Below are positions 39,040 to 47,429 of a DNA stretch of 64,000 nucleotides, in pieces. Source of the DNA: Blepharisma stoltei ATCC 30299 (lineage: Eukaryota > Protista > Ciliophora); the NCBI GenBank assembly GCA_965603825.1, contig CBFDEM010000005.1, forward strand, positions 186,001-250,000. Direction: 5' to 3'. The notes under the pieces were generated by a model, which was not told the DNA's origin, did not search any database, and worked only from the letters and a program-made list of their open reading frames with translations. The position numbers and the translations under genes are program-made. Position 1 is the first letter of the stretch; each line of letters begins with the position of its first letter.

Positions 39040-39692
39040 ATTATGGTAAATTTAATAAAATTTGCTTAAAGGAGGACATTAAACCTTTTTTTTTATAGGA
39101 ATAGAAATTTATGAAATTATTGATAAATTGTAAGAGCGAAGCAATTATAGCCACGGCCATCTTTTCTTCAAATTATTCAAAATGTATTTCAAAGTTTCAG
39201 CAATATCAAATAAGTTGAAGAACGATTTAAATATAAAAGCTCAATAAATTAAAGTATTTGCAACTAATCTTCTTTATTTTAAATTAATTTTCTGTAATTA
39301 TGAATATTTATTTTTTGCTCAGAATTTCAACTTTTGAGTGAAATTTTAAGGCGGAATTACAAAAAATTAAATGAATAAGTTTATTTATTTCTATACGCAA
39401 TTTTCTGCTAATGATAACTAATATCTAAAGAAGCAAATAAAAATGCATTAAAAAGAATAGCGTAGTACAGATATTTAGAGCTTATATTTTTCTAGTCATC
39501 TATCAGATACATCACAAAGCATTAAGATTTGCAATAATTGATGTTTTTATGCTTAAAAATTGATTTTGAAAAAAATATTTGAAATTATAAGTAGAATTAT
39601 TAGTTAAATTAATGACATATTTTTCACTTTATAAGTCAAATATAGCCATCTTATTTCATCCAAACATATCACTATATATCAAATCATAATAA

Positions 39693-42600
39693 ATGAAATT
39701 TATTGTTCTAGCGCTCATACCGCTCTGCGTTGTGAGTGATTTGGTTGCTGATTTCATTCTGTCATCTTCAAATCTCAAAAACGGAAATCTTTTCATCAGC
39801 ACAGATGGGAATTTTTCAATTTACTCGCCACAAAGTATCTACAGCGATGATGCTTACGTTCCAAAACCTACTGCAATTGGTACATACTTTCATGGCTCAA
39901 CATATTTGTATAGAGAAAATTTCCCATCAGCTTTTAAGGTGACTCATAACTTCTCAATCAAACTTTGGGTTTATTTTATTAACAATTTAGAATCCTCTGG
40001 AACTGTTTTTGCTTTGAGTTCACCAACAAATACAGAAACTCCTTATCCACTTTCTATATATCAGCAGCAGGGAAGCCTCTATCTTTCAACTACTTTAATT
40101 GAAACTTCTTCATTTCCTGTAGATTTAGGTATTTTTTATATAGGCATATGGAAACTAATAATCCTTACTTCAAGTGAAGGCACAGATAACAGTGGAGAAG
40201 TTAATATTTATGCTCCTGACGGAACTGAAAACTATCCTAGCCTTCATGCTACTGCTCCATACCAATTCCCTCTTAACGCTACTCAATTGAACTTTGGATT
40301 CAGAAAATCATCATTTATAGGGTTTCTATTTGAGGCTGCAATTTATAACTCAGAGCTTCTGTCTGCAGATTTCTCACAGTTTTATACAAGCAGCTGTGAA
40401 GGCTGTTCATTTTGTGATCCTTCTTATAACTGTCTAGATACCAGCAAGCTATATCCAGCTGAGAAAGGAGAATACCCAGGGTTTGAGCTTTGTGACAAGT
40501 CTTGCAACTATTATTGTGAAAACAGCAAGGCAGAGGATTGCTTTTGTGATAATGAACTGATAAATATAAAAAACTCAATCAATTATGATGAAGAAGAAAA
40601 TAAATGCTGCAGCAATCAGCTGTCTTTGAGCCAAAAAATTAACAAAGAAGAAACTATCGAATGCTGTGGAGAATTGCTTGAAATAATAGGATCTTTTGAT
40701 TCTGAAAACAATTTAAGTGAATCTGGCCTTATTATAGTAAATCAAGTAATAAATACTGATGATGAAGACTGTGGAGATATAAATGAACTTATTACAATCA
40801 GACATGTAATTTCTGAAGACTATGAAGAAGAATGCGAAGGATGCTTGAAATTGATAACTATCACTCATACCATCAATCAAGATAAAGAAGATGAGGATTG
40901 CTTAAATTGTGGAGATACCATCTCAGTTAATGCAATTATTTCTGAGTCTGAAGAAGATTGCCAAACCTGCGACTCTTTGTTTACCCTTACAAATTCTATT
41001 ATTGATGACTTTTCAGATTGCCTATGCGAAGATTTCATAACTTTATCCCAAGTTATCAGAGAAGAAAGTGACTGTGAATTTTGTGATTTTTTAACGTTTT
41101 CAGGAGAATTATTTGAAGAAGACTGTGAATTTTGTTCAAGCTTATTTACGATTTCTCAGGTTATTTCAGAAGAAATAGAAGAAAACTGCTCGTGTAATGA
41201 TTGAGTAACCACAAGATGAATACTTTTAGAAGAGAGTGACTGTGATTATTGCTCTAATCATATAGCATTATTTGGATGATTGGATAATGAAGATAATACA
41301 AATTGCTCTTGTGATAATAACTTTATATCAATTAATGGGACCTTTGACTACTCTGAATTATGCTGCGATTCCCAAAAATTTGAGATAGAGGGCATTATCT
41401 TTGATGATAGTGAAGAGGGATGCTGCTCCAATGAGCTTGTAGAAATCCGAGGAATTTTAGAGACAGAAGAAAAATGCTGTAAAAATGATTTAATCGAAAT
41501 TCATGGGAGTCTTCTTGATGATGGGGAGTGCTGCAGCAGTAATTTATTTACAATTTCAGGAATTATACTTGAAGATGAAGAATGCTGCCTGAGTGATTTA
41601 ATAACAATAGGAGGGATGCTTATTGATGAAATAGAATGCTGCGATACTGGCTTCATCAATGTAAAAGCTATGATTTTTGATGAAAGTGACTGCTGCACTA
41701 CTGACCTGCTTGCAATCGAAGTGACGATATTTGATGAAGAGGATGATCAAAATTATTGCTGCTCTGATAATTTGATGCTAATAAATGGATACATCTATGA
41801 AGAAGACTGCTGCACTCAAGATATGATATCTTTGACAGGAACTATATATGATGAATGTTGCAGCAGCGATTTAATAACTATTAGCAGCATAGTTTATGAT
41901 GAAGATGATGATAACAATTGCTGCATTAGTGATTTCATTAAATTAAACGGTTTTATGATAGATTATGGCTGCTGTGATGGTGATTTGATTGCTCTCAGCG
42001 CAATAATTTCAGAAGAGGAGTTTTGCTGTGAAAGTGATTTAATAAAAATAAGTAGCGCTATTTTTGATGAAGAATCATGCTGTGAAGATAATTTGGTAAC
42101 ACTTCAAGGCGAGCTTTATGATTCTGAAGACTGCTGCTCTGACTCTTATATATCTCTTCATGGAGCCATTTGGAATAATGAAGAAACATGCTGTGATGGC
42201 CAAAATTTTATAGCTTTAAACGCAACAATCTATGATGAAGAAGAGTGCTCAGACTGCAGTTCCTATATCAAAATAAACTCTAATATCTATGACGTCGAAG
42301 ACTGTGGCTCTTGTTCAGACCATATCACAATTAACTGGAAAATTGACAATGAGTGTCCATCATGCTCTGAAAGTCAAACAATTACTCTTAAAGCTTTTCT
42401 ATATGATGAGGAAGATTGCAATAGCTGTTTGTCTTCTATAGCTTTAAATGCTACTATTGATTCTGAGTGCTCATCATGCTCAGACCTTATTAGTTTTAAG
42501 TTTATAATTTCATATGACGAAGATGACTGTATTCCTTCATGCAATTCTGGAGAATTTTATAATGGAACTCAATGTGAAGCCTGTGGAGAACTTTGTGCAA

Positions 42601-45600
42601 GCTGTATAAGCAAAGAAAACTGCACAGTTTGTGAAGATCCAATAAATATGAAAATTGATAGTGAAAATCCTGGTAATTGCTTTTGTAAAGATGGAACTTT
42701 TTATAATGGAGCAACTTGTGAATCATGTAAGCCTTTATGCGAAGTTTGTGCAGAGGATGGGAGTTGTTTGAAATGTAATGGGCTGCATTTGATTTTAAAA
42801 GATGGGATGTGCGAATGCGAGAGTGGATATTATTTGGCAAATGGAATATGCACTCAGTGTGGCCTTTTTTGTAAAGAATGCTCCAACAATGGCACTTGTA
42901 TAACTTGCAATGATAAAAATACCATGAAATTTAGTGTATTAAATCCAGAAGAGTGTGAATGCATATCTGGGACTTATAGTGATGGAGAAACATGCCATAG
43001 CTGCGGCTCATTTTGTGCTGAATGTACAGACAGCATCACTTGCCTTTCTTGCACAGTTCCATCAAAAATGAAAATCAGCACCTCAACCCCAGGAACCTGT
43101 GAATGCTCTTCAGGCTTCTTCAAGTCCTCTAATTCTTGTTCTGCCTGCACAAACTTGTGCTCAACTTGCAGCTCTGAAACTTCCTGCACAACCTGTGTTG
43201 CCAATACAAACCCAATTTCCAGCAATACTTGTACCTGCAAAGACGGCTACTTCAAGTCTTCTAATTCCTGTAAATCATGCCCTTCATTATGCACAACTTG
43301 CAGTAATAGCACTATTTGTTCTTCTTGTGTAGCCAATGCTGCTTTAAATGTAAACTCTATGTGTGCTTGTAGCTCAGACTTTTCAGTATCGGACGATTCC
43401 TTATCTTGCTTAGCCCAATGCAATTACCTCTGCACATCTTGTGATAAAAATGATGGGAAAAAATGCTCAGCTTGTGTCAGTAATGCTGAATTGTTAGGAA
43501 ATACTTGCTCTTGCACTGAAAACTCAGTTTATGATTCTGGGACGAAGTCTTGTGTTTGTAATAGTGGGTATACTCTTGTGAACAGTAAGTGCGTTACTTG
43601 TAAAAATTATTTTTCATCATCTGATGTGGTTTCGATTAGTTTTACATCGACATATACAGCTATTTTGATAGAATTTAAATATTATTTAGATACAAGTGTT
43701 GACTCTTCCTGCTCTAAAACTGTAGCTTCTACGAGCCTTGCAAAACTAGGCACCAATCCAAGCTGCTCTTGAACTGATAATAAATATTTGAAAATCACAT
43801 TGGGGACAGATTATTTAATTAGGAGTGAAATACTTTATTTGGATGGAACAAATATTCTTAGAAAATATGGGACATGCTCAGTGAATTATCAAGCACTGAG
43901 TGGAACTGTCCAACTGAGCACTACAGCTTCAATTTCTGCCGTTATTTCAGGGCAAACAAGTCTATCTCTTACATGTGGCAGTGATCCTTTAGTTTACTCA
44001 GGTGAAAAATCATACGGATCTGCAGGTCTTGGGCTAACTTATTCATGGAGCTCCACAATTTCTCCTCAGATCTCTACTCTTTCCACTTATATTTCTTCTC
44101 AATCTTCCTCAAAAATTAGTATTTCTAGAAGTTACTTCAGCACCTCAGTTACCACAACTTTAACTGTTTCACTCACAGTGACTAATAAATTTGGAAATAA
44201 AAGCACTTCTTCAATTACCACTATAATTGAGCCTTCTGAAGCACTCACAGTTGCTTTCGATCAAGGAAATTCTATATCTATTTTAGCTTCTGACAGCAAA
44301 ACAATTAAAGCTTCAGTAAAAACGCAATGTGGCTCTACTTCTGAGTCAATCAGCTGGGAATGGGACTCAATAGCTGTTGATGGGTCTCCTACATATGATT
44401 CTGCATCTATTTTGTCAAAATCTAAATCCCCCAATAAGCTTGAAATCGCCCCAAATTCTTTGCCAGCTGGAGGAACTTATAAATTCAGAGCTATTGCAAC
44501 ACAAACAGTTTCAGGGGTAACATATACAGGCAACTCAACTATAACGATAGCGACTAGTCATTCTCCTTTGGTTATTGCACTGTCAAGAAGCAGTGGCAGT
44601 ATTTCTCCAAGCCAAGATTTTGTAGTGAGCGGGGCTGGTTCTTATGATCCTGATGATGCTACTGGGTCACTTAATTATACATGAAGCTGCGTGACTACTG
44701 ATTCAGATTCCACGTGTGTTGGAGCTGATAATAGCGCTTTAGTTATTAATGAGATTGGGGCTAGCTTAACTATTCCATCAAGTAAGCTAGTAAAAGGAGC
44801 TAGTTATGATCTTACTCTTAAAATTAGCAAAGATACGAGATCTTCAAGTTCTGCTATTACGATTTCTGTACTCAATGCAAATACTGATGCATCAATATCT
44901 ATTGCACTCAGTTCTCAAAAGGTGAACCCTCAAGCTGTGGTAAGTCTAAAAGCTGCTGTTGAAGTATCTTCAGAAGTTTCTATCACATGGAGTGAAATTA
45001 GTGGCTCATCAATATCAATCTCTCCAAACAACCTTCCTACAGTTTCTTTCAAAGTTGGAACCTTATCTGAAGGATCATCTTATACATTTCAGCTATCTGT
45101 GTTCGACACCTCCATAAACTTATCCTTAACAATTGAGATGCCTGTAACAACAAATTCAGGAGGAAGCTGCACAGGCTCAGTATCAATTTCTCCAGACTCA
45201 GGTCAAGCATTAATTACCTCTTTTTCCATATCAATCAGCGGCTGTGTTGACAAAGACGAAGAAGACTACCCAATCCTTTATAAATACACTGATACATGAA
45301 ATTCAAAAACCTACAAGCTTTCATCAACTACAGAGTCAAATAGCGTGACTGCTAATATGTACCCAGGCGATAATACTGTTGTAGTCTATGTGTGTGACCA
45401 ATTAAATACTTGCTCTTCGTATTCTAAATCAATCACAGTAGAAAACTATTCTGCGAGATTTCTGCAGACTACCTCACTATTAAGCTTATATAAGCAAGCT
45501 ATAATTGACCCTGACCAAATTCCTTCAGCAATTACACTATTCTGCAGCTCTGCTACAATTGACTCAACTCTATTCAGTACAATGTGGTCTGACTTGCAGT

Positions 45601-47429
45601 TATATGTAAGTGAAAATACAGCTAGCTCTGATTTATTGAACGATGCAATGTCATCTATTTTTGCCTTGACAGGACAAACTTCTATAATGTCGTCTGGTAT
45701 GTTTGATATATTTATTGAATACCTTGAAAACTATGAAACTACAAATAACATTATGCCGACTTCTGATACTATAAAATATGCTGTGGATATCACAAATAAT
45801 TACTTGACCTTTGGAGAAACAGTCAGCTTTAATGGTAGCTCAATAGAATCTTATATTGTCAAAACCAATACATTTATACAGCTGTTCGTCAAAAAGTTTA
45901 CATCAAATGATTTAGTATCTCAGCAATCTCTTGGCTCTGATGTAAATACCGACACAATTAGCCTTTATAAGCTTCGAGATTTCCCTACATCATTTTCAAA
46001 CAGCACCTTGAATTTTACTGATCACCGATCCATTAGTTTTCCAAGCTCTCTCCCGTTTAAAGACACAGATATCACTAATCTACGGGCAAATTATTATACA
46101 TATTCAGACGACTATTCAGATGTCGCTGAAATTAGTTTCGGGCTAAGTGGGAATTATTCAAATTACACTCTTATAGTTTCTGATGAAAACGATTATGACT
46201 ATAAAGCTGCTATGAATCCTATTTCAATTGAGCTGCCATTTTATAAAAATGTGTCTATTGCATGGAGGTGTCTTTATTATAACCAAACCACTTCAGCTTG
46301 GCAGTCAGATTCAACCTGCAAAATAAAAGAAGTGAAAAACTCGTCAGTTGTAGTAGAAACCACTCATTTATCTATGTATAAACTTGGAGACACCCCAAAT
46401 GTCCCACCTGATCCATTTATTCCTCCATCTTATAGCTGTGAAGATAACAATTATCCAGCAATTTACATTTTATCAGTGGTTGTTTTTATTGGGATTATTT
46501 TTATTCCTGTAGCAGTTATTGCAGATAGAGCTCAAAATACCCCAGAAATAGCGAAAAAGGGGCAGGAATCTAGCTTAACCCAAAGATACTTAATAAACGA
46601 AACATGCATGACTTCAATGGTCCCTCCAAATTCTCCAAAAGAAATTACCAGTGATCAGAGCTTTGGATCGCCAAGTCAGCTGGTAGAACCTGATGAAGAA
46701 GAAGTAAAAGAAGACAGCCCTCCCAGCAGTGATGATGACGTAGTTAGTATGGGAGACATTGGAATTGATGAGCCGCAATACACTGAAAAATCCCACGCAA
46801 GCGAAATTGAGCCAACAGTAATTCCTGAAGAAATGGCTTCTGCAACTAAAACAGAAAAAAGTCAAGAGCTCAAAAGAAAAGCACTTATTATGATTGAAGG
46901 GCACTTAGCATTTGGACTGGTTTTCTATAGATCAGAATTCAGCAGGGTTTTAAGGCTGCTAACCTTAACTGCTATCATTATATTTGAGCTGTTATTAGAA
47001 GGCCTATTCCTTTATGGATTTGAAACTATTGATGAAGGCTCACAAAAATCATCGACTAAATCAGTTTTTGAGAATTATGAGCCAAATTATTTTGGATATA
47101 CCATTTTGTCAATAGCAATAGCGATGCTAATTGAAGTTTATTTGATTATTGCATTCAGCATAGATAAAAAGAAAACACCTTATATGGCAGCTTCTGGGAT
47201 TTTGGTTGCGGCAACTATTTTATTTGGCTCAATTATTGGGACTGTTTGGCTAAGCTATAAATTTTGCCATGATTGGAATGGATATTGGGCAGCAAGCTTT
47301 TTGTTTGGAATTTTAGTTGAGATTTTTGTCATGCAAACAATTTATATGCTGTTCAGATATCTATTTCTAGAAAATTTGCCGGAGAGTAAAAAGGAAATGA
47401 GCTTAACTAAATCGTTTACTTTAGCCTAA
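39693..47429 (+). CDS. Giant polycystin-1/REJ-like cell-surface receptor, 2578 aa: signal peptide, LamG-like domain, acidic CC repeats, furin-like Cys repeats, REJ, GPS, TM region
   Basis: Five track ORFs lie in one frame joined by TGA=Trp (e.g. LNYTWSC). N-terminal MKFIVLALIPLCVVS; SGAGSYDPD (REJ); ISPDSGQALITSFSI; GPS CLYYN....WQSDSTC.........THLSMY; TM helix; H...L.....FSRVLRL motif before further TMs. Confidence 0.88.
40581..42525 (+). repeat. Protein-level tandem repeat: ~34 units of 17-21 aa, [DE]n-C(x0-2)C-xx[DN]-hIxhxGxhx[DE]
   Basis: e.g. EEKCCKNDLIEIHGSLLD / DGECCSSNLFTISGIILE / DEECCLSDLITIGGMLID / EESCCEDNLVTLQGELYD; the units are diverged at DNA level. Confidence 0.9.

Follow-up and report, generated by a model that had tools for sequence, protein, structure and literature searches.

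The somatic genome of the ciliate Blepharisma stoltei ATCC 30299 has been described as 41 Mbp in 64 telomere-to-telomere sequences with 66% AT, in which UGA is reassigned to tryptophan and introns are mostly 15/16-bp (PMC9942806). The window considered here is a stretch of 64,000 nucleotides (nt) from this organism (assembly position G000:C5:186001-250000, G+C content 33.7%), and all coordinates are those of the window unless a different contig is named. It carries on its forward strand a large gene, the product of which is one multi-domain membrane receptor of a heterotrich ciliate that reads UGA as Trp, and within the ectodomain of this receptor lies an array of 35 tandem units, acidic and built around cysteine pairs, for which no relative could be found. 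The gene and the divisions of the array are as follows:

39693-47429, + strand: whole gene, 2578 codons, six in-frame TGA codons read as Trp, TAA stop
40539-40604, + strand: unit u0, CFC-DNELINIKNSINYDEEENK (CFC, finger and acid cluster), lying 5' of the start given to the array by the original prediction
40605-40832, + strand: zone 1, units u1-2 with CC and units u3-4 degenerate (0 and 1 Cys)
40833-41360, + strand: zone 2, units u5-13 with CxxC or CxC
41202, 41217 and 41277, + strand: TGA(Trp) codons within zone 2
41361-42245, + strand: zone 3, units u14-29, 16 consecutive vicinal CC units in a fixed 15-residue register (CC-x-x-D-L-I-x-I-x-G-x-I-F/Y-D)
42246-42527, + strand: zone 4, units u30-34 with CxxC, running into canonical furin-type repeats that begin at amino acid (aa) 946

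The frame that starts at 39693 is open over all 2578 codons, the only stops within it being TGA (n=6), and it ends with TAA TAA. When translated with TGA as Trp it is identical to the public protein P0001 (2578 aa), which is unnamed and has no cluster mates. The three TGA codons in zone 2 fall at hydrophobic repeat positions (CSCNDWVTTRWILLEESD, CDYCSNHIALFGWLDNE; cf. CSDHITINWKIDNE) that are occupied in other units by W, L or F, and thus both the frame and the UGA=Trp code are supported.

With unit boundaries set by anchoring on the Cys motifs, the array runs from 40539 to 42527 (+) in units of 16-22 aa with a mean length of 18.9 +/- 1.6 aa; 34 of the units lie in aa 305-945 (nt 40605-42527) and u0 precedes them at aa 283-304. 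The original prediction, made from the letters alone, had counted about 34 units and had described a zoning of the Cys spacing along them, and both observations hold, the zoning exactly so, including the 16 CC units and the 5 CxxC units that come after them. The unit consensus is CC-x-x-D-L-I-x-I-x-G-x-I-F/Y-D-E-E-x, that is a pair of Cys followed by an amphipathic beta segment of 9 residues (L-I-x-I-x-G-x-I-F/Y), with a small residue or Gly in its middle, and then by an Asp/Glu cluster. The composition of aa 305-945 is 24% Asp+Glu, 10% Cys, 12% Ile, 8% Leu and 4% Phe with one Pro, giving a net charge of -137, and the whole array (663 aa) has 67 Cys and some 150 carboxylates. There are 18 CC dipeptides where 6.1 are expected, and the highest count in 2000 shuffles was 14; the CC content of the array is far above chance. 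A 2-unit super-period was sought in the sequence and none was found, a bump at lag 6 resting on 10 pairs only.

To judge from its sequence the array is old and maintained at the protein level, and is neither a recent expansion nor an artefact of assembly, because Tandem Repeats Finder run on the DNA did not find it (only a 9-nt trifle was reported), because units are only 54% identical at the nucleotide level (37% in amino acids) and because the conserved Ile, Leu and Gly positions are encoded by mixed synonymous codons. A separate observation concerns the Cys codons, which in the CC zone (41361-42245) are TGC 26 times and TGT 6 times, whereas the rest of the gene is close to 1:1 (31:32 in the canonical repeats); this bias may be a trace of the common descent of the CC units, or may be an effect of the TGCTGC context.

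Sequencing runs were examined for the gene, and four runs of one study contain 60-93% of the sampled words. The library type of these four is not on record and their contigs show coverage, not expression levels. One contig is gapless over 40612-42282, where it has one mismatch, and the remainder of the array is tiled by other contigs. The gene has an intron upstream of the array:

40129-40143, + strand: 15-nt GT..AG intron (GTATTTTTTATATAG), removed in contigs of runs X1 and X3 and retained in run X4

The public model P0001 translates this intron as five residues inside a ConA-like domain. Coverage at 39450-39648, just 5' of the ATG, is absent in every run. Because the 15 nt are removed in X1 and X3 and retained in X4, and because coverage 5' of the ATG is zero, spliced RNA from the + strand is present in these runs; the array is transcribed, colinear and in frame, on which the original prediction had depended. 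Within the array single contigs differ from the genome at 14 sites, ten non-synonymous and four synonymous, with 0/14 at a Cys or a core Ile; these may be alleles, strain differences or errors, and little weight is placed on them.

The original prediction had not recognised the unit as a member of any known repeat family, and this was upheld by searches with the stop-free pieces or with P0001 (five intron codons included) as queries. A Pfam scan of both array-bearing pieces gave no family on the array at E<=0.1, PDB sequences yielded no match to it, whether queried by the protein or by a 3-unit profile, and nothing usable came from the features of the ESM Atlas. When units 14-34 were searched with phmmer against 1.84 billion representative proteins only the protein itself and three spurious matches were returned, the latter being unrelated repeat proteins (a TPR-like NB-ARC protein, one with YRQLCYSS repeats and one with GCCPSGLLSVGAVVRR repeats). 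A word-index search with region 295-945 of P0001 found only itself among proteins of 1418-4511 aa and nothing among proteins of 214-680 aa, searched for fragments. The single match in a metagenome scan with the protein, of 36 aa, was spurious, arising from the word WNNEETCC in a small unrelated open reading frame. Searches of the organism's own genome (an assembly of 41.46 Mb in 64 contigs) with the 3-unit profile gave 13 matches, 13/13 of which are within this gene, and the protein query too hit this gene only. As far as these comparisons of sequence reach, the array is without a detectable relative in public data and has to date been seen only in this gene of this species, in collections where heterotrich genomes other than that of B. 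stoltei are perhaps poorly represented.

Several known repeats were compared with the unit directly. A leucine-rich repeat or receptor L domain (PF01030) was rejected, since there is no match to a hidden Markov model (HMM) and the period is wrong, the unit being 18 aa and the coils of the receptor L domain about 25-30 aa with an LxxIxGxL bend; the receptor L domain shares only the short motif L-x-x-I-x-G-x-I with the unit. Thrombospondin type-3 and LDLR-A repeats were rejected as their motifs are absent. The RTX beta-roll (PF00353) gave no Pfam match and its GGxGxDxUx motif is not in the unit alignment. Likewise the hexapeptide repeat of the left-handed beta-helix (PF00132, [LIV]-[GAED]-x2-[STAV]-x, in triplets of 18 aa) gave no Pfam match; a 6-residue period is kept only by C1, I7 and I13, with D, G or E at the i+4 positions, and LpxA-type chains appear in Foldseek only at E>1. 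A metallothionein was also rejected, the array being 10% Cys, 12% Ile, 8% Leu and 4% Phe whereas metallothioneins are around 20-30% Cys with almost no aromatic or large hydrophobic residues. Nor do the furin HMMs PF00757, PF14843, PF07699 and SMART FU match the array (Pfam scan, E<=0.1).

The remainder of the protein is that of a large modular receptor, with the following features:

39693-39761, + strand: N-terminal hydrophobic segment (hydropathy peak at aa 4-22), a probable signal peptide
39927-40364, + strand: weak ConA/Laminin_G_3-like region (Pfam E 0.019, 15.5 bits, below the cut-off of 27.6)
40392-40538, + strand: Cys-rich module 5' of the array, ending in CFC (furin-type Cys pattern only, read from the translation; no HMM match)
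42528-43727, + strand: about eight canonical furin/ephrin-receptor-type Cys repeats (CxC ... CxxC-x3-CxxC ... CxxC-finger), with a match to EphA2
44685-45296, + strand: REJ/PKD-like Ig region, Ser/Thr-rich (Pfam REJ E 6.6e-19; K319L-like PKD E 2.6e-6)
46365-46373, + strand: HLS, a GPS-like motif preceded by W..C..W..C (motif only), 32 residues N-terminal of the first transmembrane (TM) helix
46467-47366, + strand: TM1 (46467-46523), followed by a long acidic loop and then by some four further hydrophobic helices (46956-47366), from hydropathy

The match of the canonical repeats is to the Cys-rich region of EphA2 in PDB (E 1e-4), the furin-type families of Pfam giving them no match, and the REJ match (PF02010) scores 68.3 bits against a cut-off of 25. 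With the REJ domain, the GPS-like HLS and the TM helices in place, the earlier suggestion that the array is inserted in the furin-repeat stalk of a surface receptor is supported. The GPS-like motif (46290-46373) reads ETTHLS, is without the usual CxC before HL and has two Cys, not four; because of those two missing Cys, autoproteolysis at this site is uncertain on the sequence evidence. REJ, PKD-like Ig, an HLS motif of GPS type before TM1 and a large modular ectodomain are all shared with polycystin-1, sea-urchin REJ proteins and adhesion-GPCRs, from which the protein differs in its five or so hydrophobic helices and in the Cys of its GPS. Pfam gave no family on the last 709 aa, neither a PLAT nor a polycystin channel domain nor a 7TM/11TM core being found.

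These last 709 aa do have relatives at home, there being at least 15 paralogues in the genome with 37-44% identity, which end open frames of up to 9202 aa. No paralogue of the ConA-like N-terminus was found in the same genome. For nine paralogues 10 kb upstream was read, and there the ectodomain consists of a long series of CxxC-[10-19-aa Cys-free finger]-CxC repeats; among L031, L032 and L033 a REJ match was found only in L033 (E 1.9e-31). The genes of this family (loci L017-L034, on C37, C25, C8, C60 and other contigs) have the C-terminal GPS-like/TM module in common and carry giant frames almost wholly of Cys-rich repeats, and several copies on C25, C35 and C38 have TAA/TAG stops and look like pseudogenes or fragments. 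L032 and L033 (G000:C60, minus strand) are tandem paralogues with very regular 60-aa Cys repeats of 15-16% Asp+Glu, whose fingers are near-identical (TDTTHTSAAPD / TDTTHMLGEPD). Compared with the acid array these repeats are much more uniform, as would be expected had they expanded or been homogenised recently.

It is in this setting of Cys-rich repeats that an origin for the array can be proposed. The array is flanked on both sides by furin-type Cys modules, starting right after a CxC (CFC), and after its last finger comes C-IPS-C-NSGEFYNGTQC, with which a canonical repeat ordinarily begins. Furthermore the paralogue L031 (G000:C8:190300-200299, minus strand) has around 30 furin-type repeats of 52 aa, with 31 CC in all, in which a long basic finger (KVKVKKTS-CC) leads to a vicinal CC junction occupying the site of the usual furin-type CxC (C-SDLMKFRNIKVKVKKTS-CC, as compared with C-SSDLITISSIVYDEDDDNN-CC in the array). 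The L031 finger and the acid unit have the same length and hydrophobic alternation and are of opposite charge. Because of the position and architecture of the array and the CC junction in L031, the unit probably arose by duplication of the beta-finger and junction Cys pair of the flanking furin-type repeat, an argument from position and architecture that carries no statistical link. With hhalign the comparison of acid-finger and furin-finger profiles gives a probability of 0.1-0.3%, the same value as is obtained for L031 fingers against other, true furin fingers, the profiles being too short to discriminate. The original prediction did not recognise the repeat as furin, and this is probably only half right, since the unit looks like the finger and Cys pair of the adjacent repeats and L031 has the same CC junction within full furin-type repeats.

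Furin-type domains are ladders of disulfide-closed beta-hairpins, in which the close Cys of each junction bond in opposite directions to give a ladder-like rod (PMC3905715). The array has in common with the furin and growth factor receptor Cys-rich regions (R-spondin Fu1-Fu2, EGFR, the Cys-rich region of the insulin receptor, Eph) extracellular, Cys-free beta fingers of 10-19 aa bounded by Cys pairs; it is contiguous with such repeats, and shares its CC with the same junction in L031. It differs in that its units are of 16-22 aa (typically 18) with 2 Cys, compared with around 45-60 aa and 6-8 Cys including a CxxC-x3-CxxC core, which the array lacks, in being hyper-acidic and rich in Ile, Leu and Phe, and in matching none of their HMMs. 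A conserved x-G is placed exactly midway between the flanking Cys in the modal finger of 16 residues.

Structure prediction was carried out with AlphaFold2 on two constructs. For residues 538-1000 (463 aa), without an alignment, the model has a predicted local distance difference test score (pLDDT) of 53 and one strand of 9-13 residues per unit, and it aligns to right-handed beta-helices, namely EtpA (Z 19.0 over 258 residues, 3.3 A), VacA p55 (Z 15.9) and the Ca-dependent antifreeze protein 3p4g (Z 15.2). Foldseek with the AlphaFold model gave nothing below E 0.9, the weak rows all being beta-helices. For five units (90 aa), with an alignment (A2) made of non-overlapping 5-unit blocks from other units of the array, there was no gain in confidence (pLDDT 53) and the model resembles antiparallel meanders at Z<=5.6. 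Every unit is beta in both runs. The beta-rich character that had been read from the sequence is supported, and the original suggestion of a long beta-meander or beta-solenoid is divided between the two models, the longer favouring a parallel beta-helix and the shorter an antiparallel meander; as the two disagree, the topology modelled may be a hairpin ladder, a solenoid with one coil per unit or a meander.

The explanation that we favour, though tentatively and at a little under an even chance, is that the array consists of stapled fingers derived from furin-type repeats, with acid clusters that bind Ca2+, and forms a rigid polyanionic stalk. The "finger and Cys pair" of a furin-type repeat would have been duplicated some 35 times and would then have diverged. 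The first Cys of each pair would close the preceding finger and the second would open the next, bonding to the first Cys of the following pair, so that a disulfide would staple the strand-turn-strand of each unit and the array as a whole would form a beta rod, stitched covalently, of 17-35 nm, if its 35 units are taken at about 5 to 10 A each. The approximately 150 carboxylates beside the junctions may bind Ca2+, as at cbEGF junctions or in Ca-dependent beta-solenoids, and Ca2+ would stiffen the rod, which could then act as a rigid polyanionic spacer between the N-terminal lectin-like domain and the furin/REJ/GPS/TM part, keeping the two apart. In cbEGF arrays (fibrillin, Notch) an acidic cluster before the first Cys binds the junction Ca2+ and so stiffens the rod. 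The D-x-D-E-C of those arrays and the D-E-E-x-C-C of this one make a functional analogy only, as a cbEGF module, which has the EGF fold with 6 Cys per roughly 40 aa, shows no homology with the array. There are several points against a stapled furin-derived finger. It is reached wholly by inference as regards its origin, disulfide pattern, Ca2+ binding and spacer role, from an anatomy, expression, uniqueness and context that were observed directly. No statistical link joins the array to the furin repeats and Pfam (E<=0.1) has no match on it. Canonical furin fingers contain far less Ile, Leu and Phe than these units, whose composition suggests that they have a true hydrophobic core. Whilst the arm before the Gly is fixed in length, the arm on its C-terminal side ranges from 5 to 11 residues, which suits the corner loop of a solenoid better than a regular hairpin. 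The confidence of the AlphaFold2 models is low and neither places the turn at the Gly. Finally the array has an odd number of Cys (67), which means that one or more must be free or paired outside it.

The main rival, which we judge clearly less probable, is a beta-solenoid that arose de novo, unrelated to furin repeats, with one coil per 18-aa unit. In it the Cys pairs would form a seam of stacked thiols or inter-coil disulfides, and a ladder of carboxylates would depend on Ca2+ for folding, much like RTX beta-rolls and the Ca-dependent antifreeze solenoid of Marinomonas. Coils of 18-19 aa are found in RTX, left-handed beta-helix, FHA-type and MpAFP solenoids. The period of the array is similar to that of RTX (18 aa per turn) and of Marinomonas primoryensis region IV (19 aa per coil, 3p4g), and the array shares with these Ca2+-dependent solenoids short beta segments, a Gly at the turn and one acidic site per coil; however, it is without their glycine-rich Ca-binding turn motif and has Cys pairs in its units, and the match to 3p4g describes a model of pLDDT 53 only. 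That two Cys per short repeat are compatible with a solenoid is seen in the Tenebrio molitor antifreeze protein (TCTxSxxCxxAx), where one disulfide per 12-aa coil can stitch a narrow beta-solenoid; that protein, also a regular short repeat, differs from the array in its 12-aa period (18 in the array) and in having a Thr ice-binding face and not being acidic, and there is no sequence similarity between the two. The alignment of the 463-aa model to EtpA, VacA and 3p4g, the acidic loop of variable length beside a fixed 15-residue core that is typical of solenoid corners, and the high hydrophobic content all speak for a solenoid, but the pLDDT of 53, the antiparallel meander obtained for five units with the repeat-derived alignment, the absence of RTX, hexapeptide and antifreeze motifs and of any Pfam match, and the simpler origin offered by the furin-type flanks and the CC junctions of L031 speak against it. 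A more far-reaching form of the idea, given about the same modest probability, would make the array a new structural class, a Ca2+-dependent beta-solenoid or arcade of 18-residue coils in a polycystin-like receptor stalk, where the seam of 16 vicinal Cys pairs either zips the coils together by an unbroken line of disulfides between them or is a stack of strained vicinal disulfides, able to serve as a switch sensitive to redox state or force.

The three remaining explanations carry much less probability. CC, CxC and CxxC are classic metal-thiolate motifs, and with 67 Cys among its 663 aa, some 150 carboxylates and a Cys spacing that drifts whilst the pair itself is kept, the array might be a thiol or metal module, its reduced or redox-active pairs and carboxylates binding Zn, Cd or Cu or sensing redox by a chemistry like that of metallothioneins on a beta scaffold. 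Against this, the array follows a probable signal peptide and lies among disulfide-rich extracellular repeats, where oxidised Cys would be expected, its 10% Cys and roughly 30% large hydrophobic residues are unlike metallothioneins, and it has no His and no further ligand pattern; such a module is very unlikely. That the array is found in a single gene of a single genome, has ten non-synonymous variants for four synonymous ones and is modelled with low confidence might be explained if it were fast-evolving filler, a weakly constrained and partly disordered acidic spacer with a periodicity that is a relic of duplication. Yet although units share only 54% of their nucleotides, the Cys pair, I7, I9, I13 and D15 have been preserved by a mixture of synonymous codons, all 14 variants lie outside the Cys and the core Ile, and the strict hydrophobic alternation is unlike a disordered acidic linker. 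Filler is, if anything, slightly more improbable still. The idea given least credence, suggested by charge complementarity, is one of adhesion in the manner of "Velcro", in which the acidic fingers would pair electrostatically, in cis or between mating cells, with the basic CC repeats of L031; the roughly 30 KVKVKKTS-CC fingers there are of similar length and opposite charge.

The repeat itself is absent from the collections searched, whilst Cys-bounded beta fingers, acidic junctions and a rod-like Cys-rich stalk are of known kind. Its confinement so far to one gene of one species limits its general importance, and a run of 16 consecutive vicinal Cys-Cys pairs is very unusual chemistry. The gene belongs to a set of at least 15 giant receptors of REJ/GPS type in Blepharisma, which have hypervariable ectodomains and no known ligand or function. 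If the reading of the array as stapled fingers is true, no furin-type module known would be smaller than this one, consisting as it does of a single finger and Cys pair, and it would be a natural case of a complex Cys-rich repeat that has been pared down to an 18-residue block and then polymerised; such a module would be of interest both for the evolution of repeat proteins and for the design of disulfide-stitched rods.

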